From Oculina patagonica (taxonomy: Eukaryota), in the NCBI RefSeq assembly GCF_052425735.1, contig NC_135765.1:31992001-32056000 (forward strand): DNA of 64,000 nt. Direction: 5' to 3'. Made by a program: the position numbers and the translations under genes. The notes under the pieces are model-generated. The model made no database searches. It saw only the letters and a program-made list of their open reading frames with translations, and was not told the origin of the DNA. Within the stretch, counting starts at the first letter, position 1. Every line of letters begins with the position of its first letter. Below are positions 23,801 through 46,563 of the stretch, piece after piece.

Positions 23801-24667
23801 CTCAATGAACAGATTGTGTGTGTGTGGGTAAGCTCAATGGCCTTTGGCTAGTAAAATAGGAACTTTTCTAAGTAAATATTTTAGGGCTTTTGATGCCTGG
23901 TGTATAGTTCTGAAACAAAGTAATTATTGTGCAAACAAAGAGTTTATAATAATGTACTGGTATTAGGTAATATTTATTTGGTTAACAAAATTAATATAAG
24001 GCTCGCTTAAACTATATGTAAAGAAATATTTTCATGTTTAAAATGAAAGTATCTTTGACTCAGTCCTAGTCTCCGTTATGAAGATATTCTTATTAATCCC
24101 CCTGGTTCACTCAATAACCTAGAGACTGAAGAACAGCTTATTAGGTTTTTCTTAGGGAGTACTGGCTTCATGCTAACAGAAACTATGAAAGTGCTGATAA
24201 TCTTTCAATTTAATTTCTTGCGTAAAGCCAAACATTTATTTGACCTCACTATATTATCACGGCAAATCCAGTCTGAAAGAACACGCGAGTAGGGAACGCA
24301 GGGCGTGCGCGTAGATCACGCGAAAAATCGCGAGGGAGACTACACGCGGAGAACAACAAGCAAACGCGAGAACCCGCGAGAGATCCTCGCTTGATGCCAG
24401 TCGTGTGCAACCTTCTCTGGTTGGATGACTTTGGCCTTAGCTACACCCACTGCTTCTAATGCGATGCAACATTCTCTTTGTAAATTTTTGGGGGGTGTTG
24501 GGGAAGAGACAGTTTTTCTCAAAGGATAAAGCCTGGGTTTCACTAGCGACGCAAGCACAAGCGCAAGCATAAGCGCAGTCACGCAAAAAGGACAAATTGT
24601 GGTCCTTGTTCTTACGCTTGCCGCAAGCACAAGCGTAAAACTGCAATGCGTTTGTGCTTGTGCTTAA

Positions 24668-27600
24668 GAGACAGATTCTGAATTTTTCGAGATTCGTCCG
24701 ACAGAAAGGGAATTTCAATTTTATTTTTATTTGCCCCAAATAAACCTTTTAGTAAACTATTTTCGAAAATGACATTAAACGGTTCAGTTTCCTTTAACTT
24801 TTTTTAAAATTAAGAAAAGTTAAAAATTCGAAAAGCAAATCCACCGTGGCGACCATTTTGGATGAAATTTAAGGTGTTTTCACGACACTCGTGTATACAT
24901 ACCAAACAACTACTCAGTATACCCTTTACACAGCTGTTTAGGTATCTCTTGAAGTTTATTTTCAGATATATTTTGTTCGAAAATATCACGTTTAAGAAAA
25001 GTTACGATCTTCGACAACCGACCCATTTCTAGAACATAAACGACAGGGCGAATATTAGCTAACTTCAAGATTGTCAAAAGCGGTCTGGTATATTGTTTTG
25101 GAGTTAAAAAACAACACCAAATTGAAGCTAAACCTTTCTTCTCTCTGTCTGAAAAATATTACTGGTGGCCCGTAAAAACTGTTCCGCTGAGAGAATTAAC
25201 CATAAAGGCTGTTTTTCGCTCTGACTCTCTCTATTTATAGTAACTATTTGTGAATTTGTCCCGAAATATAATTCTTCCTAGCGGCTTTTGTACCGTAAAG
25301 ATCCCGATTAATGCCACGAAAGAACTTGAACGTTTAAACAGGTTTTAAAATTCAGTGTGCATCGGTCTTGGTAGTTGCTCTAGCAAGAAAGAACAGCTTT
25401 CGTTGCGGGATTAGTAATTAGGAAGATGTACGTTTCGGTCTCGACATTCTGTCTGGATGTGAACGGCGTGGTATAAATTAAATTAAAGGCAAATCACGCT
25501 TCTCATAGATAGAACAAAATAAAACATAATCCGACCCAATTTACTTAAAACATGTTCATGGTATAAAGTCCTTAATGATGGGAGCGTAAGTATTTCTTTA
25601 TCTTAATTAAATCACAGAAAAACTACCCGGGAATAAATCAAACCGTCGGCGTGTTTACAGAAGGAAAAGAGAAAAGTAAACATTTGCGTCCCTTCAATGA
25701 TAGTTCAGGTTGTCTTATTGTGCAAAACTACGGTTGTGTGATGTTAAAATCACCTTTTATGTGCTTAAATCTATTAATGTTTAACATTATTTTCTTTAAG
25801 GGGGAACGTATTTATTTGAACATTGCTGACCCTACTGGAAGTGACTCAAACGAATTTAAAACTTCCAGTTTCGTGACGGCTAATATTTGCATTTGTCTCG
25901 TCCTGAACCTTTGCTGTTTAAAAATAACTGAATTAACCATCACGATAGTTGCAAAGATAACCTCGGTGTTAACATAAATAGTAACGAAACTGCGGCTTGT
26001 TTGTGATCATAAATTATAAATATTACTTCTTAAATGTACACACAATATACTTACATTCGACATTCTTCGACATTCTGTCTGGATGTGAACGGCGTGGTAT
26101 AAATTAAATTAAAGGCAAATCACGCTTCTCATAGATAGAACAAAATAAAACATAATCCAACCCAATTTACTTAAAACATGTTCATGCTACAAAATAAATT
26201 TATAGAAAAGAGCCACAACTAATCATGAAACAGGAAATATTATCTGTTTGTTTATTTCCGCTTCAAGTCCTTCAATAACTTGAGAATTAGTTAAGGCATT
26301 TGATACTGCGAAGCCGTCCTGCTTTCTTTTCATATCGGTCAAAAGAATGATCATTTATGCTAAAAAAAAGTTGAATCGATCGATTTTATATGAAGAAAAA
26401 GAAAGTGACAAAATCCTTCGATACAACGATTTTCCGTAAACATGTTCATCACGCAAAATTTGTCATTCACAAACATCGTCTTCATTTCCTCGACTTTAAT
26501 TTAAATACTTCATTTTCGGGCAGATGATTATAAAGCTTTAACACGTACCTTAATTCTTCCGCAGTGTATAAAATGAAAAGGACCCGCTTCTCGCCGATTA
26601 TTAATTAGAGAGAAGGGACTTTTACACCTAAAAGTTTTTTGTGTTGCGTGACAAAAACGCCAAAATACATGCATAGTTAATTAGATTCAGGAAAACAGTA
26701 CGCAATGTTTTTACGCTGTGGTCACATTTCGCAGAATTTTTACTCTTTTTTGTGATCTACTTGTGAATGTTTTTTAACAACAATTATTTTTCGATATTAT
26801 TTCTCGCCATTATGGCGTGCTGTAGCTATTCGGAATTGGTGAGTGGGGATTGTGGATCAAGCCTTGATAACCCAACTAACATCAAATGTGTTACTTTACG
26901 CGAGTGCACGAAGGAAGTCTACAGTCACCTAGTTTTTTGCAAAGTTAGCGACGACAGCGAGATTGATACTGAATGGAAGTTATTGCTTGCAAGAGCAGGT
27001 AATGTGCAAAATTCGATGTATAATGAGACTCATTTTTACAATATTTCACACTAACAATAATTCCGCCGGCAACAACAAGGAAATAATACCAAGTTTGTTG
27101 TTGTTTAGGTGTATTTGAAGTTGATGAATCTCACCTAGCAATGAACATATGCCCTCGTCATCGGGACTTGTTTGGTGTGCGCTGGAGGTCTTCTAAGACA
27201 AACTGCACCATACCAGATGAAATAGCTTCCCACAAATCAAAAGCGAAAGGCCTTTGTGGTTTACGGAGAAAGCAGTCACAATTTGTCTACCACAGAACCC
27301 AAAAGCTTATTCCAGTAGGGTCCAGTGAGTACCATGATGTTTTAAAGAAAACCATATATACGTACTAATTCAGTGGTGTTGTTTTAAAGTTAACCATGTA
27401 CACGTGCTAATTCAGTGGTTCAGTTGACCTGTTGACGGTTTAATTAAAATCCGGACAACAGACGATACAGCGCCTGATCATTGTAGTCCAGTCTTAACTC
27501 CTGTCACCCTGGCAATGTTATTATCACACCAATAGGAGAATTTAAATATCCGTTATATATCTAAAATTGTTTTTGTACTTTATTAGAAATTTGCAAGCGA

Positions 27601-30600
27601 TGTAAAGAGCATCTCACAGGAAGTTTGAGCATTGACGCAAGCTTTCAAAGTTTTCACGATCAGCCAGAGCTAGTGACACCAAATGTGATAGAGGAGCCCA
27701 CTCCAAAGTTTTTAACAATTAGGGTAAGAACTTGAACAAACGGAATAATCATGCCTAACAGAATGATAGTTGTTATCTTAAGGCCATTTTCAGTGACACA
27801 TTAATATATCAACCATGATAATAAAAAGAGGAGCTTAACGCGGTTTTCTTTCTTTGCAGGCACGTAAAGAAGTCTCAAGCTCGTCATCTGATGAATTAAC
27901 CGAAGGCATCAGGGGCATTAAAATTACTGACGAGAGCTACTTACTTTCCTCTGATGCTGGAAGCGAGGTGTCATCAACAACCGATGCGAGTGGGGCCTCT
28001 TCTGACGATTGCACTCGCCGTCAGAAATTAAACGTGTTCTTAGAGGAGTGTGGAATCCAACCACTTGGAAGGGCGTGGCTTGCATGGCGTGAAATTAGCG
28101 AGAGAACAAAAGAGAGATATCTGAAGCAAGAAGGCGCGGCACCAATTCCAAGTACGTGTCCTACGTCTACTGAACACCGCGTTGTTTCCTCGTCTATTCT
28201 TTCAGAAGGTTGGGCCCTTAGAGCCCCCAAAAAATCCGACAGATTTAATACAAAACAGAAGGAATATTTGGAGGCCAAGTTCAATGTTGGTCAAGTTACT
28301 GGAAGAAAAGTGAATCCCGATGTTGTCGCTAAAGACATGCGACGCGCAAGAGACGAGGGTGGAGAGAAACTTTTTTCCAGTTCCGAATTCCTAACGGTCC
28401 AACAAGTCACTTCGTTCTTTTCCCGTCTTGCTGCAAAAAGGCGACAGCAATTAGCCACTGAAGAAGACGTATGTGCAGCAACAGAAGAGGAAAACTTTTG
28501 TACGGCAAGAGAATCTGTTCTGTCGTCCTTAGATCTGCAACATCCGATAACATATGACCAATTCAACATTTGTGCATTGGTCCGGGAGAGCAAGCTCAAT
28601 AAGTTAAAAGTTGCTATGCTTCAAGTAATTTGCGAAGCTCTCAATTTGGAAACACCTGTACCAGCCGTCAAGAGAAAAGCTCCTTACACAGCTTTGCTGG
28701 TTGATGCCGTAAGCAAGTGTTCCTGTAGCGACACTGGTTGAGTTGACGTCATCCATGTCATGATTGTTATCATAATAGTCGTCCCTAGAAATTAACTGTT
28801 TTGTTGTGTTATATGACACTGTGTCATCTGACAAGATTTAGTAGAATACGTGTTTGCATATTATGAGGCCCGAAGTATTACTTTTTCAAACCTATTTTAT
28901 ACCCCACCTGTTTCTCCACTGATCTGCCTATTTTTATGCCTTTTTTTTATCGAGAAGGTGGTGGTGAGAGTGGAGGGTGATCGCCTTTTGTATGAATTTT
29001 ACCAACTGGTGCACCCTCTCATTGGGAGATTAAAATGTAATTTAGATTCCAATCGCTTTGCCCCGCCGCACCTCCCCTGAGGGAAGTTTGTAGGGTGATC
29101 ATACGCAAGGGAAATTACCGTGACTGGGGCTGTGTCACGTAATTGCATTCCGTGAGTTTGCGCGCGAACAAACGGTTGGTAACAATATCACACACCAGGT
29201 GCTGTTTATAGAAATGTTATATAGTGCAGAATCGTTTCACTTGTTAAAACGTCGAGTTTGGAGACATTTCTGCCGCCCAGTTGATCATTTCTAGCGGTTG
29301 TTTAGTTTGGTTGGTTAGGAACATTGTAGACATTTATGTAAGTATATTGTGTGTACATTTAAGAAGTAATATTTATAATTTATGATCACAAACAAGCCGC
29401 AGTTTCGTTACTATTTATGTTAACACCGAGGTTATCTTTGCAACTATCGTGATGGTTAATTCAGTTATTTTTAAACAGCAAAGGTTCAGGACGAGACAAA
29501 TGCAAATATTAGCCGTCACGAAACTGGAAGTTTTAAATTCGTTTGAGTCACTTCCAGTAGGGTCAGCAATGTTCAAATAAATACGTTCCCCCTTAAAGAA
29601 AATAATGTTAAACATTAATAGATTTAAGCACATAAAAGGTGATTTTAACATCACACAACCGTAGTTTTGCACAATAAGACAACCTGAACTATCATTGAAG
29701 GGACGCAAATGTTTACTTTTCTCTTTTCCTTCTGTAAACACGCCGACGGTTTGATTTATTCCTGGGTAGTTTTTCTGTGATTTAATTAAGATAAAGAAAT
29801 ACTTACGCTCCCATCATTAAGGACTTTATACCATGAACATGTTTTAAGTAAATTGGGTCGGATTATGTTTTATTTTGTTCTATCTATGAGAAGCGTGATT
29901 TGCCTTTAATTTAATTTATACCACGCCGTTCACATCCAGACAGAATGTCGAGACCGAAACGTACATCTTCCTAATTACTAATCCCGCAACGAAAGCTGTT
30001 CTTTCTTGCTAGAGCAACTACCAAGACCGATGCACACTGAATTTTAAAACCTGTTTAAACGTTCAAGTTCTTTCGTGGCATTTATCGGGATCTTTACGGT
30101 ACAAAAGCCGCTAGGAAGAATTATATTTCGGGACAAATTCACAAATAGTTACTATAAATAGAGAGAGTCAGAGCGAAAAACAGCCTTTATGGTTAATTCT
30201 CTCAGCGGAACAGTTTTTACGGGCCACCAGTAATATTTTTCAGACAGAGAGAAGAAAGGTTTAGCTTCAATTTGGTGTTGTTTTTTAACTCCAAAACAAT
30301 ATACCAGACCGCTTTTGACAATCTTGAAGTTAGCTAATATTCGCCCTGTCGTTTATGTTCTAGAAATGGGTCGGTTGTCGAAGATCGTAACTTTTCTTAA
30401 ACGTGATATTTTCGAACAAAATATATCTGAAAATAAACTTCAAGAGATACCTAAACAGCTGTGTAAAGGGTATACTGAGTAGTTGTTTGGTATGTATACA
30501 CGAGTGTCGTGAAAACACCTTAAATTTCATCCAAAATGGTCGCCACGGTGGATGTGCTTTTCGAATTTTTAACTTTTCTTAATTTTAAAAAAAGTTAAAG

Positions 30601-30724
30601 GAAACTGAACCGTTTAATGTCATTTTCGAAAATAGTTTACTAAAAGGTTTATTTGGGGCAAATAAAAATAAAATTGAAATTCCCTTTCTGTCGGACGATT
30701 CTCGAAAAATTCAGAATCTGTCTC
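24668..30724 (+). mobile_element. Sola3-type DNA transposon, internally deleted, with 1389-bp TIRs
   Basis: TTAA is duplicated at 24664-24667 and 30725-30728, and the termini are GAG...CTC. TIRs 24668-26056 and 29336-30724 are nearly identical (four mismatches noticed). The internal gene has a GWAL motif. These match the described Sola3 hallmarks. Confidence 0.85.
26812..28741 (+). CDS. Truncated Sola3 transposase-derived protein, 473 aa, 4 exons, no recognisable catalytic core
   Basis: Exons 26812-26998, 27109-27324, 27587-27723 and 27860-28741 give 1422 nt without internal stops. A Cys/His-rich N-terminus (ICPRHR...C...H...ICKRC) joins near 28120 to the C-terminal GWALRAPKKSDRFN.KQKEYL..KF..GQ.TGRK..P...FLT.QQV.SFFSRLA region. 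Confidence 0.75.
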
Positions 30725-31441
30725 TTAAGTCGAGGCCGTTTTCACGGTGAAATAAGAGCTGTTATTCTTGCGCTTGTGCTTGCGTTTGTGCTTGCGTCGC
30801 TAGTGAGCACCAGGCTTAAGTAAAATTAAGAGAAATAAGAAAATATAGGAGATTTAATTTGAAGTTAAAAATTGGTTACCAGACAGTCCCCCTGACAACC
30901 TGGAGTGCTCTTGCGTGGGGGTCAACTCTTACTATCTAGTGGTGTTTCAAAAACTTTTTTCTCTCTTTAACCCCTTCTTTAAACTTCCTAAAATTCCATT
31001 CAAATTCGGATATACATAAGGAGGAAAACGATCTTACAACGATAGTTTCGGTTTCGTGAGGAGCGATGAATTTTCAACACACCTTTTCGACATCCCTTGT
31101 CTGCAATCTCCGACTCACTGGTGACAAACATGTCTGTCACTTGTCTCTCTTCTCATATTTCTCAACTCTTTATTTCCCATCACCCCTTGAGTGCGTGTAT
31201 TTTATTTTTTGGCTACAAAGACATCTAACTAGCTAGGGGTCACTTCGGGTGTTTACACAAGAAAAGCTCCCTTTACTGGAAACAATACCTTCAGCTTGCT
31301 CGTGTTTATATAAAAACTTGTCATCGGAAAAGCAAACAAGATTATTCTGTCCATTCTCGAGATAAACGACAGCGCAAGAACAAATGCTCATCGCGTTTTA
31401 AAATTCCAGGCCGACGTCACGCTCAAATTAGCTAAATTAGA

Positions 31442-34400: not shown

Positions 34401-37209
34401 CATAGGGTCTATGGGACTGGGCATGAACTTCTTTTTTGGCCCTTTCACTAGCGCACTTTGTGATCGATTTGGTTGTCGGATCGTCGCCATGTTCGGTGGA
34501 ATCATCTCCGTTACTGCTATGTTTGCAACTTCCTTCGTCAACAGCCTCGTTCCCATTTACTTGACCTATAGCATTTTGTGGGGAATGGGCTCCAGCATGT
34601 GTTACGTCCCGACATTCCTCATGGTCGGCAGATACTTTGAACGTCGGAGATCCTTAGCGAATGGGATCATTACAGCGGGGAGCGCTGTCGGTGCTCTAGT
34701 TATGGGACCTACTATAAACATGCTCTTAGAAAGTGTTGGTTGGCGTAACACAATGAGGTTCCTTGGTGGTGTTTCTTGCGTCATGGTTTTGGCTGCCTTG
34801 ACTTACAGACCTGCGCCTGTGAAGAGAGAAGTAAATTTTGAAAAGAAAAAGAAAAAACTTATTGATATATCCGTGTGGAAAAACAAAGGATTCGTTGTGT
34901 GGGCATTGGCGCTTGGAATATTCAATCTGGGATATTTCGTTCCTTATGTGTACTTGGTAAGGTTTTACTCTTGTTTAATTTGCTTTGCCATTTGCTGCTT
35001 ACTTTAGTCATGAGAATGGAATTATTTTAGTACTTAGCTCAAACTGTTGATTCTCCTTACTAACTGCCACGCATTTCTTAAGTTTTGTTGTTAGTTGTGA
35101 AAATTCGGTTGTATATAAAGACCGTATCCTCTAGTTGATGACTTGCTTTATTTTCATTGCCTGTCTAACGACAATTGATTCCGCTTTTAGAGCAGTTTTT
35201 TATTGAGTGTCGTAAAACCAAAAGCAAAGTAATTACTCTGGCCAATCACTAAAGACATAGACAATCCAGTGAACCAATCAAATTTGAAGCAAATACATGT
35301 CGCAGACCCGAAGCGCGGGAAAACGTGCGCGGGCGAGTCACGATTGTTTTTTGTTTTAGTTTTTAATGGCTAGGAAGTGGCGCAAGATTTTTAATTAAAC
35401 CAATCACTTAGCGTAGTTATGCAAAACCAAAGCAAACACGAATTACTTTCGACACTCAAGTGAAAACCGCTCTAATAGAGTAATAACAGAGGAGGTGCGT
35501 CAGACTTCCCACAGTACATTGCAAAATAACTAAAATTCCTGTTCCGACGGATGTTGTTGCAACTCAATTTTTTTTCCTTTTCTTCTTTCAGTGTGCAGAG
35601 GTCTACTTTCAAAATTATGGGTCCTTGAGTACGGTTGAAGTTTTCTTTCGACCAACTGTAATCGTGTTTTGAAATCGATGTTCTCGAGTTCAATACGTAA
35701 ACTCCCGTTATGTGAAAAGTTTTGTTGCTCGCATTTAAATTGATAAAAATAATGATTAATCTGATGTTATTTTTTCTCAACTTACAGCCGACGCATGCAA
35801 GCTACTTAAACATACCTGAATCACAGGCATCGTTTCTGATCGGCTTCCTGTCGGTTGGTTCGCTATTTGGTCGGCTCTTCTTCGGCCACTTCTCGGATTA
35901 CCGATGGGTCAATCGTCTGTACCTTTACCAAACGGCACTGCTGATTATGGCTGTTACGACCACGTTGTGTCCTCTGGCCACAAGCTATGGCGGGCTCATC
36001 GTCTACACGATCTTATTCGGGATATTTGATGGCGTGTTTGTAGCGTTGATTGCAGTCCTTACTGGAGATATTGTTGGATTCAATAAGCTGCCGTCCGCTC
36101 TTGGCTTTCTCTATTTAGTCTTCTCTGTGCCGATTATGACTGGATCTCTTATTGCAGGTATACATTATCTTTAAGCTTATTTCTTCTTTGAAAACACAAG
36201 ATTGAGGGGGGGGGGGGGAACTTAAAGTAAAAGTTTCATAGAGCGGTTTCCTCTCGTGATCATCAGCGCGGAGTTAAGAGAAGTTTGCTTGGGAGTTGCG
36301 CGATATGGCAATGGTCTTGTTTTGTGTGATACCAAACGAATTCGTCATGAAAACCCTTTTCATCTAATGAAAACGTTCTGTATATCTTATTATAGGAAAT
36401 TAATGCTTCCTAAATTGAAGTCTTTGAAATTAACGCAACTTAAATAAACGCGAATTGGAGGGTAAATTTCTTTCATATGAAGGAAATTAACGCGAGAGAG
36501 GGGGAAATTTCTCAAAACAAAGAAAATTAACGCGAGTTATGACGTATCTAAAGATATTTTGGTTGTAGTTAAAAAACGGATGTGGAGAACCGCTCTTCTG
36601 AAAGCAAGAATGAACTGAAAATATTGCAGATGAACTATCTTTAAGACTTTTACATTGTAAAAGATTAAGAAATAGCGTGCAAAAGAGAGAAGGTTATTGT
36701 TTCCAAGTTCTATGTGTTCGGACAATATCTAGAAGGTATTTGAAAATTAACGCTCCACTTAAATAATGTCGCGGAAATTAACGCTCACGAAACGTAACGT
36801 GACTTAAATTAAGGCGAATTTTGAGAACTTCATGGAGCGTTAATTTCCTATATCAGGGTATATTAAAGTGTGTTGTTGTTTTATTGTGGGCGCCAAGTAA
36901 AGAAAATGGTTGTGTGTTATTTTTGCAGGTTTTCTCAGTGAAATCACCAGCACCTACAACGAGGCATTTTACTTCTCTGGCGCCGCCATTGCAGTGTGCA
37001 CATGCGTGCTGTCACTAGTTCCAGTCTTCGCTCCGATGAGAAGACCCGGTCCCACAGAAATTAAAATGAAATCAGATGAATTTGAGGAAAGGAAACGAAG
37101 ACCTTCGTTCTTCGAGAAATACGTGCAAAGATACTTTAGCGTTTCGAACGAAGATCCTTGTGAAGTTGTGGAATACTTGTTGGTTGTTGACAAAGTAACG
37201 GCGGTCTAG
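31442..37209 (+). CDS. SLC16: Monocarboxylate/aromatic amino acid transporter (SLC16, MCT10-like), 477 aa, 4 exons
   Basis: Exons 31442-31664, 34397-34956, 35788-36157 and 36929-37209 (1434 nt, phases consistent). Motifs DGHWGWVV, LCDRFGCR, YFERRRSLANGI..AGS, GYFVPYVYL and GRLFFG. Confidence 0.93.
32090..32203 (+). repeat. Penelope-like terminal repeat fragment containing a minimal hammerhead ribozyme motif (copy 1)
   Basis: gccc-CTGATGA-a-ggttg-gttttgtt-caacc-GAAA-ta-TT-gggc at 32103-32144. Nearly identical to 60505-60618. Confidence 0.65.
32751..32838. mobile_element. Small palindromic MITE-like element
   Basis: agtctgaatttcagacgtcttctctggta ... taccagaaaagacgctgaaattcaggct. Confidence 0.55.
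35188..35474. mobile_element. MITE, same family as 23524-23800 (opposite orientation)
   Basis: tagagcagttttttattgagtgtcgtaaaacc ... gacactcaagtgaaaaccgctcta. Confidence 0.8.
36381..36861. mobile_element. MITE with repeated aaattaacgc motifs
   Basis: TIRs tatatcttattataggaaattaatgc / gcgttaatttcctatatcagggtata, with several internal aaattaacgc copies. Confidence 0.6.
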
Positions 37210-41296: not shown

Positions 41297-44200
41297 TCAC
41301 GCTGCAGAGGAAAGCAAAGGTTGAACTTGACCTAGCTGAGGGCTGTGTTTATAAGTTTCAGATTTTAAATTTACCCTCCGTGCCGCTCGGATTACAATTA
41401 TTACCAGCCTCACAAGCTGCGAAATTAACGAAAAGGATACAAAAACTGCAAACACGAGAGGAACGGCACAGAGTAAGATAGCTTCTGTCAAAAGAAAGCT
41501 TTGTACATACTGCGCTTGAACACCTCTAGCCTCAGTCCCCTCTGAGTAATAGGATGTGACTCCAACGTTCAGTATTGCTATGACGACCAGGCTTGTCAGG
41601 GAAACGGTTTCAGCGAAGTTGTCGCGGAACTGGACAAATGGCTTCCGGGACACGTGATGCAAAAGGAAAAACAGGCATAGGATTGTCAGGCAGACAGAGC
41701 GCAGAAACGCATGCTTGAGAACCGAGCCAATCACGATCAGTATAAATCGGCGCCCAATAAGAACGCATTCCCAGTGAATCCTTCCAGATAATCGGTTACC
41801 CTCTGGTTTGCAAAATGGAGCGGTTAGGACTTCAAGAACTGGGTGTCCTGTGGTGAACGAAAAATAAGTGTCCTTGCCGTCTTCACGATAAAAAATGCTG
41901 CACGGAGATTTAATTTCTTGACAGTGACGTATTACTTTCACGACATAAGCAATGAGGAGGAGGAGAAGGTATGGAAGCGGAAAAAAGCACACCAGTATGA
42001 AACTCTTTGCTGAAATCTGCCCTCGATACAGCTGAAATGAAGCAAAATATAGCGCGAATATAAACGGGACCAAGTACAGAGCTATTCCCAAAATAGCCGC
42101 CGTATGCCACCACTGATTGCACGTGATTTCGGCGTCGTAATACCAGCGAGACACGTGCTGTATTTCTACACACTTCAGCAGCTTCATTGCTGTTCCAGTT
42201 GCCGCTGAGTATCCTAGCAACAAGATTTCCAGGGTCGCTCCAAGGTAAGGACCACTTGGGGGGAGCACTGGTGTACGCTTGCGTAGTTTGTTCAGACCGC
42301 TGTGCAAGAGGTAAATAGCTGGGATCGACAATAAGATAGCCGTGACAGCTGCAAGTTGGAACAGTGTTTTTGAAAGCGATGTGATTCCTGGAAAGGGGCA
42401 GATCCTCCAATCATTATTGACAGACATCTTAAAGTCAAGAAGGCTTATCACTGGTAATGCAATGTTATCTTTTAACACCCCGCTCACGCCATAGTACGAG
42501 GCGGTCAATACTCCAGCAATTTGATAGAAGTAAAAGAGAATTTTTAAGAATCCAGAACTTGATGAACTGCTGTCTGTTTTGGCTTCACTGTCCAGGCTGT
42601 TGTAATCGTCGTGAGCTTTCCCTCTGAGCCTCGGAAGAAACCATGTAAGATTTGTCATCAATATTTCAACCACTGGCGGCTTTCGAATGAGAAACAGAGC
42701 AAATGATATTATGAAGATGAAAATAATGATCAAATACCACCAATGGGTGCAGTCTTCGACTGGAAGACAGTTCGTTGTAAACAGCGTCTCACTGAAATCC
42801 CGCTTACATCTTCCGCAAAGAATCCCTGTCCGGTTTCCTTGACAACCAGAATGCAGGTAGCTACTGCTGTGGTAAGCGCATGTTTGATTGACAGCCGGAC
42901 AGCAGTAACCTTGGGGACAGAGCTTAAAGTGCACCTTATTGCCAATAGGATATCCCCAAAAGTTGTGCCTTGCTGAAAGAGAAGAGGTGCAGTTCCCATT
43001 CGTCGGGCAAGGCAGGCATTTAGGGTTATCCCTAATAGTGAATCCTTTACTGCTGCCTCTGTTAATACTGTAAGTTCCTATGGGACATGGCTCGGTGATT
43101 AATGAAAACGACGTGATTTGAGTTTTAGAGTTCGGCCTTTCTTCCAAGTGTGAGAAATTATGCAGAAGAAGCTTAGAGCTGACCGGGGATTTGATTTGTA
43201 CCGAATCGTTCATGACTACCTTGTGTACACCTTTAACAAGGATGAGAATCTTACCATCTCTACTAGGTGGATCCAACACAAACGAACTCTCACGGATTGA
43301 CATGTTTCCTGCACTTGCCACTGTTAAGAATCCATTGTATGGTTTCTCATTCGAGGCACGGTAGACTTGGGATTTCTCAAACTGATAGAAGTTGGTTTTG
43401 TAAATTGTCAGTTCGCCGTTTGTCCGCATCTGCACGCGCATGTGCGAGCCATCTATACCACCGAAGTTGTTTGCAAAATTGCTATTTTGAATGTCAACTT
43501 TTTCGACATCAAGTATTGTTAGCGTGCTTTCAGTAACTCCGGAATTCCCGCGAAACTCCGTATTGTTTATTGTGACCCGATGGTTGGAAACCACGATCGG
43601 AGAGCACCGGTCGGACGACAAAACAGAAATCTTCACCACTCCCGATTTGCAAAAATTGTTCAGGAATGTATTTGCTTGGAAAAGCAAGAAATTCTGCCCC
43701 TCATACACGGAAACCCGAAAGATAGAACTTTTTGCTGTGCAGTTGTTGTTCAAAAATGAAACATTCTTGAATTGATACTTCGATCTGTTACCTATTCTGC
43801 CGACAGCGGTTTCCGTGTAAAGATATAACTGAAAGTTAACGTTGTCGCTTATTATGGAATTCTCCACAAGGATGTCTTTGGTTCCAAAGTATATTCCACC
43901 TCCTGAATTATTTTGTATTTTGCAGGAGCTTATTATCAAGACACTTGAAACAAAGGAAATGTCAAGGCGACCGCTCCCTTTGTTTTCAAAGAACGTCGAG
44001 TTTTGCATTATTATCCTCGACTGAAATAAACTACCAGAAACTACAAGTTGAATAGCACTGATCCCTGAATCGCCTGAATTTCGGATGAATTCACAGTTCG
44101 AAACAACAGCGTCCCTATAAAGAGTGGCCATGAAAGCGTGAATTGCTCCAGCAGTGTTCATTCCTTTTGCTTTATTGCCTTTGAAAGTGCTGTTTGTTAA

Positions 44201-46563
44201 TGATAGGCTCTGAGCGTGTAACATGTACAAAGTCAACGCACCACCTCCTCCGGCTTCCTTGGACACTGATTGGAGGATATTACCTCTGAAATGCGAGTTG
44301 CGAATATCTATGGTAGCATTATTTTGCGCCGAACTATAATAAATTCCTACAGTTATAGCACCGCCTGTGACCCAGGCTTCGTTTTGGACAAAATGGCAGC
44401 TGTCGATATCCAATATCAGCAAAAACATATCCTGGAAAGAACACGCACCGCCACTTTCAGCTTTGTTAGATCTAAAGTCTGACCGCAACAGAGAGACGAA
44501 AGCCTTCTGCGCGAATCCGCTGACAGAAACAGCTCCTCCGTTCCCCCTCTGTCCAATTTCGTTCTCAACAAACGTTCCTTTCGCGATTTGCAACTCAAGC
44601 ATATTGTTATTGTGAAGATTGACAGCTCTACCGGCGTTTTTTGTAAAGTGCGTTGATTTGAACTCGACGTATGCGTTTGAAGAATTACGAATGTCGAGAA
44701 TACTTTCTCCAGCTTTGTTATCCTCAAAAGTTACTTGATTCATCTCTAGGATTAATTTTCCTTTTACGCCAGCGACAATTTCAAAACATGCAAGACCAGA
44801 ACAATTATTTTGTGAGACAGTTATGTTTGTAAAATTAACAGTGAATTTAGCGATCTCTTGTACTTGTGAGGTTTGTGCTGACATTGTCAATAAAGTGTCG
44901 CTTTCATTGTAAAGCTTATTTTTAGTAAACGAGGAATTCGAAATGATCAAATTCACTGAATTGCCGGAAATCTTTAGACCACTGGCGCTGTTGTTTTGAA
45001 AGCTGCAGACATCCAGATCAATGTTTCCTGCAGATTTTTGGGAAAAGTTCAGGGAAACCGCGCCATTGGAACCATTTACGAAACTACAGTCGGTCATCTT
45101 CAAAGAACATTCATCAAGATGTAGAGCAGTGTTAACGAATGTAATTCCTCTCAAAGAAACCCCATTAGAAGCATTTACACTGGAGTCACACGAAAATCGA
45201 AAGCTATTGTTCTTGCAAGCAATAAACGCACGAGTGTTATAACTGCGCATGATCACACTAGCCGTCTTGGAACGAGATTGTTCCTTCTCTCCAATGGAGT
45301 TAGACTCGCAAGGATAAGGGTCATGTGACGTGCCTGCTCCGTCAATGTTGATGACGTCACCGTCAAACGCACGCGAGGTAGCTTTGTGGATGGTTTTGCA
45401 CGGGAGAGACGATTGAAGACCGCAGTCAAGGGCTGAGCTTCCATGAAGTCTTGAGACAAACCACTCTTTGGCAGAGACGTTTCCTAGTTTAATTACAAAA
45501 ATAAAAGCAAATAAAACAAAAGTTTCCGATACAGAAACACTTCATTGATTATGTTGATAAACTGTGTAAATTATGGCCGTACAGGATTTGGAAAAGCTAA
45601 CGTTTCGGATGTTAGCCCTTCTTCGGGGCAACAAAATACTGAAAATAAAGTACGGTAAGCTAAGTTAAAAATTGAAGGAAAACAATCGTCTTTGAATCGA
45701 GGGCTCGAGGCAAGCTATTCACATATTTGAGCTTGATCAAAATCACCGCTCAAAGGAAAATGACCCAGTTATCTCTTTCCCCGCTATCTCGAACTATATT
45801 TTGTTTCCCAATTCACTTCCTACGTTCTGATGACTTGCTCGTGACTTTTGGCATCACGCTTACGGTCACGCGTCACGAACTCAGACAAGTCACGCGATAC
45901 TTTGTAAAGCGAAAATCACAGCCACACAAGGCTAAATTTTTTTAGAAGAAGGAAGGTAGAAAGTTTAAATCGATTCCTAACTTATAGTAAAGCCATTTTC
46001 TTTTCTCGTTGGTGGCCTATGTTAAAGATAATTGGGATACATCCCCTCAGTATTAAACACGCAAGAAAACAACAAACTTCCTGCACCGACTTTAGTTCGA
46101 GTTTGTACAAAACCCTTTTGCTCCTCAAGACATTTTAGATAATTAAATTAGCCATTGACGATCTACTTTAAATCAGCACCTCTTGCAACAGAACCCTGTT
46201 CGAAATTCGAAGTGGTGTTCTAACGCATTTACAAATGTTGCCTTCAGGCCGGGCACCGGAACTTGACTAAACGTTTACCCGGAGAGTTTAACGAAAATTG
46301 TCGCTTAAATGCTTTCTTCAAATGTGTATTTTGAAAAAATCTTTGCTAAATACACCATTAAAACAAGAAATATTACTCTTTTAAAAATGTCTTGAATCGT
46401 TCGTTATATTTCCCCGTAGACAAAGCTAAACAATCTATGTACTTTATAATCGATTACAAAGCATCAAATAAAATATTAAGCGGTGTATCAAATGAAGATT
46501 TCACATACCGTAGGAGCAGAATCCACTCAAGAAAAACAGCCAAAGAAAGCATACAAAACCCAT
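41297..46563 (-). CDS. Large orphan membrane protein, 1413 aa: signal peptide, Pmp/pectin-lyase-like beta-helix repeats, Cys-rich domain, multi-pass (7TM-like) C-terminus
   Basis: Signal-peptide exon 46563-46509 (MGFVCFLWLFFLSGFCSY, phase-1 donor gtatgt) splices to a 4187-nt exon 45483-41297 (4242 nt total). This extends ORF 41297..45256 with GNVSAKEWFVS..DCG..PCKTI. FxxN and GGA repeats are followed by PCPIGTYS, CPQGYCC, CQGNRTGILCGRC and about eight hydrophobic helices. Confidence 0.85.

Follow-up and report, generated by a model that had tools for sequence, protein, structure and literature searches.

An in-frame internal deletion in a TTAA-flanked DNA transposon copy of the coral Oculina patagonica

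We analysed a 64,000-nt stretch of the genome of the coral Oculina patagonica (assembly GCF_052425735.1, contig NC_135765.1, positions 31,992,001 to 32,056,000, forward strand), hereafter the window, and positions given without another label refer to it. A DNA transposon copy occupies 24668-30724, with TTAA at either end and the termini GAGACAG...CTGTCTC (coordinates of all features are collected in Table 1). The exons of its gene were read by hand from the sequence and then translated. Four exons of 187, 216, 137 and 882 nt, separated by introns with GT..AG ends throughout, gave 473 codons and a stop. The GenBank protein at the locus (KAL9965735.1, 473 amino acids, hypothetical protein ACROYT_G029577) is identical to the hand-built model, which confirmed the four canonically spliced exons and the stop-free frame reported in a preliminary description. 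The RefSeq protein XP_078380331.1 (488 amino acids) differs solely in its start at the upstream ATG 26767, 15 codons earlier. Searches were run exon by exon, and whole-protein scans used the NCBI record KAL9965735.1. The preliminary description had further proposed that the element is a young Sola3 copy, that its gene derives from a much longer transposase gene by an in-frame internal deletion, and that the product is a candidate repressor of transposition comparable to the KP derivative of the Drosophila P element.

The window copy belongs to a family of 11 copies in the 529-Mb assembly, with ~98-99% identity, 7 of which are near full length. A normal copy is ~8.45 kb long and has a six-exon gene encoding 1162 amino acids. 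The full-length copies diverge from the window copy at 28126-28128, in agreement with the junction previously placed at ~28120. Full-length exon 4 reads gatatctgaaGCAgacatc and exon 6 reads cttctctgctGCAagaaggcg; the window copy reads gatatctgaaGCAagaaggcg. The deletion extends from exon 4 to exon 6 (~3.0 kb) and reduces the coding sequence from 3489 to 1422 nt. Codons 271-959 are gone, that is 689 codons, and 1162 - 689 = 473. Exon 6 contributes ~615 nt to the fused exon 4 if the GCA shared by both parents is counted. In both parents, the G of this microhomology is a third codon base and the CA are first and second bases. Since the codon phase is the same at both breakpoints, the loss amounts to 689 whole codons and the frame is kept. 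The proposal that a much longer transposase gene had lost an internal part in frame was thus borne out, with both protein ends kept. The possibility, raised in the preliminary description, that full-length members carry the same short gene was rejected, as their gene has six exons and 1162 codons. A cryptic intron was likewise rejected, because the removed segment lacks GT..AG ends. An 81-nt probe across the junction was contiguous at the window locus only. We consider it highly probable that the window copy is a non-autonomous internal-deletion derivative of a ~8.45-kb TTAA-targeting cut-and-paste transposon, that it originated by faulty gap repair, and that its frame was kept by chance.

The lost segment comprises the rest of exon 4, the whole of exon 5 and the first 98 codons of exon 6. 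The predicted structure of full-length exon 5 is a canonical RNase H-like fold (mean predicted local distance difference test score, pLDDT, 73.6), in which D114 lies on beta1, D197 closes beta4 and D238 opens the helix that follows beta5. In 30 homologues, D114 and D238 were invariant and D197 was nearly so; the three residues correspond to D642, D725 and D766 in full-length numbering. Foldseek matched the exon 5 model to the IstA transposase (E 4e-5), retroviral integrase cores and RNase HI. No C/DxxH motif was found in exon 5 between D197 and D238; a conserved C-K-x-H lies past D238, likely the third catalytic residue, and ahead of a nearly invariant E254. The exon 6 segment that was lost encodes a finger, FSCPQEGC-x12-H-x5-C (C2HC), directly upstream of GWAL, which in relatives is C2H2. 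The preliminary description had noted that neither a D-D-D core nor a zinc finger upstream of GWAL was visible. We confirmed that both are missing from the window copy and present in the full-length copies, and the window protein therefore cannot cut DNA.

The retained parts are a Cys/His-rich module (residues 1-180), the Cys and His positions of which recur in a 1183-amino-acid relative; a disordered Ser/acid-rich linker and two helices; and ~200 C-terminal residues with an AlphaFold pLDDT >90. Modelling suggests that this C-terminal part combines a homeodomain-like with a SAP-like fold, at middling Z-scores. The best match of the former was HD-ZIP 9lpe (Z 6.6, root-mean-square deviation 1.7 over 69 residues), and several Hox/Exd homeodomains were matched as well. 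The latter matched the SAP domain of Ku70 (1jjr; Z 6.1, TMt 0.53), and the Pfam SAP hits (E 0.03-0.06) fell below the curated cut-off. Pfam gave no significant match on single exons, the 473-residue protein or full-length relatives, and it did not find the THAP domain suspected from the C..C..CPRH pattern. Matches in the ESM Atlas were restricted to unnamed cnidarian and mollusc clusters, and the homologues (n=1321) were all unnamed or 'hypothetical'. The C-terminal domain had 2058 relatives, located in nearly all cases at the C-termini of longer proteins, and no natural short fused form occurred among the top 150 of them. Three relatives, P0171, P0187 and P0217, were rejected as junction-crossing candidates, because the window segment before the junction aligned weakly to their zinc-finger segment. 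This segment (DDCTRRQ...ERTKERYLKQ, 27995-28128) aligns weakly with the zinc-finger segment before GWAL (L021:9480-9620), so the fused protein looks collinear with relatives, yet it lacks the zinc ligands. The likeness may be due to chance or to an old internal repeat.

The left arm of the window copy is also rearranged. The near-identical terminal inverted repeats (TIRs) of the preliminary description were recovered as inverted arms at 24668-26056 and 29336-30724, which have 4 mismatches in 1393 nt. The arms of the family are ~924 nt long, with 97.5-98.7% identity within each copy. In the window copy, the left arm carries right-arm diagnostic bases from arm position ~721 inward, and we observed this chimeric arm, the 469-nt extension, the filler and the 127-nt duplication in the window copy only. 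Three of the 4 arm-to-arm differences are private mutations, corresponding to ~0.11% per site. In the internal region, private divergence reaches 0.67%, which indicates that the arms were homogenised well after the split from the siblings. The description of the element as young needs qualifying, as this divergence falls within the range of its siblings (0.25-0.69%).

Interrupted synthesis-dependent gap repair is known from P, Ac/Ds and other elements, and its textbook footprints are template switching, filler DNA and microhomology joins; internal deletions of the P type have classically been ascribed to gap repair left incomplete after excision. We infer that a single faulty repair event of this type would be the most economical account of both rearrangements. 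A double-strand gap would have formed in the window copy, for instance after an excision attempt, and synthesis would have proceeded inward from both ends using a template copy. On the left side, synthesis would have switched template within the inverted repeat, run on for 469 nt through right subterminal sequence and come back with the 10-nt filler. Finally, the new strands would have annealed at the GCA microhomology, and 3.0 kb would have been dropped. Read in this way, the sequence of the window copy cleanly documents template switching and the joining of microhomologies during repair in a coral genome.

The deletion could also have arisen without transposase, by slippage or end joining at tctgaaGCA / tctgctGCA, with the left-arm rearrangement as an unrelated second event. 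The shortness of the microhomology at the junction would suit this explanation, and the 333-nt repeat found at the very same nucleotide in another family copy, C1402, hints at a local fragile site. However, with 3 kb between them the 9-nt repeats are distant for slippage, and two rare rearrangements in one copy, one of them with inter-arm template switching and filler, are better explained by a single aberrant repair. We regard a transposase-free origin as unlikely. An assembly artefact, in which the junction, the 1393-nt arms or both stem from a mis-assembled repeat family, was considered because 11 copies are ~99% alike and long near-identical inverted repeats are hard to assemble. Nevertheless, the window copy has its own flanks, its own TTAA duplication and 22 private substitutions, and the junction microhomology is clean. 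In addition, the filler and the 4 arm mismatches are not products of collapse, and the contig is chromosome-sized. Mis-assembly is therefore extremely improbable as the source of these features, and we retain faulty gap repair as the preferred origin.

The C1402 copy deserves separate mention. Its 333-nt insertion (L028:2861-3201) is an interspersed repeat with an A/T-rich tail and an AGCA duplication, and at least 263 candidate copies were found. The nucleotide of insertion is the exact start point of the window deletion. Common ancestry of the two copies was rejected, as they have zero derived sites in common, and the two changes are therefore independent events at one spot. Their coincidence reflects either chance (roughly 1%) or a fragile site.

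We examined the ends of 10 family copies; TTAA was present on both sides, with unrelated flanks, in 10/10. The window copy is inserted in the middle of a small palindromic repeat resembling a miniature inverted-repeat transposable element (24527-24663 and 30729-30820), which has >1000 candidate copies genome-wide. In three uninterrupted paralogues of this host repeat (C12:22752758/22752759, C14:24699056/24699057 and C5:6797928/6797929), the left and right flanks are contiguous across a single TTAA. Since the empty host-repeat copies have one TTAA, the TTAA is a true target-site duplication and not host-repeat sequence. Because its ends and this duplication are intact, the window copy could in principle be mobilised in trans by the three intact full-length copies of the family.

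These three copies (C14, C4 and C6a; ~8.33-8.49 kb) have exons of 187/216/137/1044/994/911 nt with all splice sites present and an open frame of 1162 codons. The frame is lost in C9 and C12, both near full length, by coding-sequence deletions of 151 nt and 10 nt, respectively, and in C6b by a 625-nt deletion. The copy C8 at 33.46 Mb has two 1-nt indels and measures ~9.7 kb by its arm coordinates, with ~1.2 kb extra near the 3' end. The near full-length C1402 carries small deletions of 13 and 2 nt, by which the frame is lost, in addition to its repeat insertion. A second deletion derivative of 5319 nt is represented by C6c (L029:3280-8598; C6 36.67 Mb) and C3 (L030:3570-8888; C3 8.47 Mb), which have a common deletion from intron 2 to intron 5. 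As these copies lie at separate loci, that derivative has transposed. Its exons 1, 2 and 6 would join in frame to give 437 codons, open in the C6 copy and interrupted by a premature stop in the C3 copy. We also found an older related subfamily of 4.5-5.3 kb (76-91% identity, ~0.9-kb arms) at L037-L042 (C8 12.56, 24.79 and 29.12 Mb; C6 5.82 Mb; C1078; C1672). These elements keep the start-codon region and part of exon 6, and their coding remnant has decayed, with many frameshifts and stops.

Seven independent coding deletions were counted among the family copies (window, C6c/C3, C6b, C9, C12 and two in C1402), and the frame survives in two of them. Chance would predict about one in three, and in-frame deletions are thus not over-represented; this agrees with the earlier caution that the frame could have been kept by chance, about one time in three. 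Taken most simply, the intact frame is probably a product of chance, and the recent date of the rearrangement has left the reading frame little time to decay. The private changes in the retained 473 codons, 4 non-synonymous (S176F, K180R, A232T and Y996D) and 3 synonymous, show no sign of constraint, and most of these substitutions are probably older than the deletion. We infer that the open frame has no selected function.

Several points weigh against the interpretation as a chance product of faulty gap repair. The repair scenario is built on sequence footprints, and the two rearrangements may be separate events. The C6c/C3 derivative likewise retains N- and C-terminal exons in frame and has transposed. 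Two annotation pipelines, GenBank and RefSeq, call the window gene, so that transcript support is possible; a RefSeq model alone is no demonstration of transcription. Moreover, the Cys/His module and the modelled homeodomain-like and SAP-like parts are the likeliest DNA-binding parts of the protein, and interference is plausible if the protein is made.

Given these points, we weighed a KP-like trans-dominant regulator, in which the 473-residue product binds the ends or pairs with full-length transposase and lowers transposition of the family. In the KP element of the Drosophila P family, an internal deletion removes the catalytic part, the frame remains open and the N-terminal zinc-dependent DNA-binding region is kept. 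KP elements occur in many copies and are frequent in populations, and experiments have demonstrated both the repressor activity of KP and its THAP and dimerisation domains. The window copy resembles KP in that its in-frame deletion (codons 271-959) removes the catalytic middle alone and leaves both ends. The C-terminus, for which the model shows a long-helix homeodomain-like fold and a SAP-like motif, would be compatible with such a role, as would the N-terminal Cys/His pattern conserved in the 1183-residue relative and an upstream region collinear with full-length copies. The gene is annotated by both GenBank and RefSeq, and the three intact full-length copies are possible targets. However, KP elements have been amplified, whereas the window junction is single copy. 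The window protein also differs from KP in that no THAP domain was found by Pfam and the C-terminus is retained as well. Frame preservation across the family deletions is no higher than chance, the private changes contain no excess of synonymous ones, and Y996D adjoins the conserved GWAL-RF motif. Furthermore, the older short elements with a C-terminal region have decayed, and the short fused architecture is absent from the top 150 relatives. A regulator of this kind is quite unlikely. The preliminary description had held that a junction both unique to this copy and not transcribed would speak against its proposal; the junction is unique in the assembly. Overall, its structural inference of an in-frame deletion without a catalytic core stands, and the KP-like repressor found no positive support here, interference potential being common to many truncated transposases.

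The stronger proposition, that the coral would make the 473-residue protein and that this protein would dominantly inhibit a Sola3-type family which is still active, either through occupation of the 924-nt arms or because it poisons assemblies of the transposase, is very doubtful. If true, it would represent a KP-like regulator of independent origin in the superfamily. To our knowledge, no activity or regulation has been demonstrated for the Sola superfamily.

Regarding classification, Sola elements reportedly make 4-bp target duplications, as Bao et al. are said to have described in 2009. The putative Sola3 label of the preliminary description is compatible with the D-D-D core, the absence of a Pfam family and the 4-bp duplication. 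The likeness to Sola3 lies in the long transposase of the full-length siblings, whose D-D-D RNase H-like core is invisible to Pfam, and in the combination of a 4-bp target duplication (TTAA) with terminal inverted repeats. An arm length of 924 nt is great for any superfamily. In the Repbase classification, Sola3 is a group of the Sola superfamily (PMC4455052), and Sola cores have no Pfam similarity (PMC5751038). Kolobok elements are characterised by a TTAA 4-bp target duplication and 5'-RR..YY-3' termini (PMC9587614), and the family resembles them in its TTAA duplication and its termini GA..TC. It appears to differ from Kolobok in that the catalytic model matches IstA and retroviral integrases, not hAT- or P-like enzymes, in that the 40-residue interval between the second and third acidic residues is too short to accommodate an insertion domain, and in that the C-K-x-H, the sole CxxH-like motif, stands behind the likely third catalytic residue and not ahead of it. 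PiggyBac was excluded, because Pfam DDE_Tnp_1_7 was found on no exon and not on the 1183-residue relative, and because the termini are GAG..CTC, not CCC..GGG.

Internal-deletion copies are a normal by-product of cut-and-paste transposition, and the window element is itself ordinary in this respect. Most Ds-type internal-deletion derivatives of Ac and comparable non-autonomous elements lack an open fused frame. The window copy is similar to them in its intact ends and target duplication, its internal loss with microhomology and filler, and its dependence on autonomous siblings, but its fused frame is open and carries a gene annotation. For annotation purposes, the 'hypothetical protein' that NCBI lists here should be taken for a truncated transposase rather than the product of a host gene. 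The family has three full-length genes that appear intact, a derivative with intact ends whose deletion is resolved to the nucleotide, and a protein lacking the catalytic core. With this material, excision and interference could be assayed for the first time in a poorly studied transposon group.

Table 1. Features of the transposon copy in the window.
Feature	Position	Strand	Evidence
Left TTAA target-site duplication	24664..24667	.	TTAA at both ends and unrelated flanks in 10 copies; empty sites
Canonical left TIR, ~920 nt, terminus GAGACAG	24668..25587	+	97-99% match to left arms of all siblings
469-nt left-arm extension, inverse copy of right subterminal 29336-29804	25588..26056	+	Window copy only; sibling arms ~924 nt
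10-nt filler between extension and resumed left-arm sequence	26057..26066	+	Window copy only
127-nt direct duplicate of 25441-25567, where normal left-arm sequence restarts	26067..26193	+	98% identity
5' internal region before the start codon, with the alternative ATG 26767 inside	26194..26811	+	Collinear with full-length copies
Exon 1, 187 nt, ends in phase 1; begins the conserved Cys/His-rich N-terminal module	26812..26998	+	Splice sites, translation
Exon 2, 216 nt; ICPRHR..FG..W motif, conserved in the 1183-residue relative	27109..27324	+	Splice sites, translation
Exon 3, 137 nt; ICKRC motif; two private non-synonymous changes, S176F and K180R	27587..27723	+	Splice sites, translation
Fused exon 4, stop included: first 269 nt of family exon 4 and last 613 nt of exon 6	27860..28741	+	Comparison with full-length copies
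Deletion junction, GCA microhomology within imperfect 9-nt repeat tctgaaGCA / tctgctGCA	28126..28128	+	Alignment with full-length copies
GWAL motif, then predicted homeodomain-like three-helix unit with long third helix	28208..28501	+	AlphaFold model, structure matches
Predicted SAP-like helix-extended-helix region, C-terminus	28544..28717	+	Structure match, weak Pfam match
3' internal non-coding region	28742..29335	+	Collinear with full-length copies
Right arm: subterminal 29336-29804 and canonical right TIR 29805-30724	29336..30724	-	Arm comparison
Right TTAA target-site duplication	30725..30728	.	10-copy end comparison; empty sites

Some further observations concern the family and its surroundings. 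Intron 4 of all full-length copies contains a ~255-nt high-copy repeat (L021:7522-7775), for which 605 candidate loci of 90-94% identity were found. The gene model ACROYT_G023351 (P0132, contig C6; 452 amino acids) joins EGF-domain exons to transposon exon 4, which is 97-99% identical to residues 1-92 of window exon 4; it is probably a chimeric gene model across a transposon copy. Downstream of the element, the window contains two host-like reading frames. The first, at 34411-36174 on the plus strand, consists of two hydrophobic exons and is membrane-transporter-like. The second, at 41297-45256 on the minus strand, is a single open reading frame of 1319 amino acids, in which N-x-S/T-rich units are repeated and the C-terminal part is a multi-pass membrane region.

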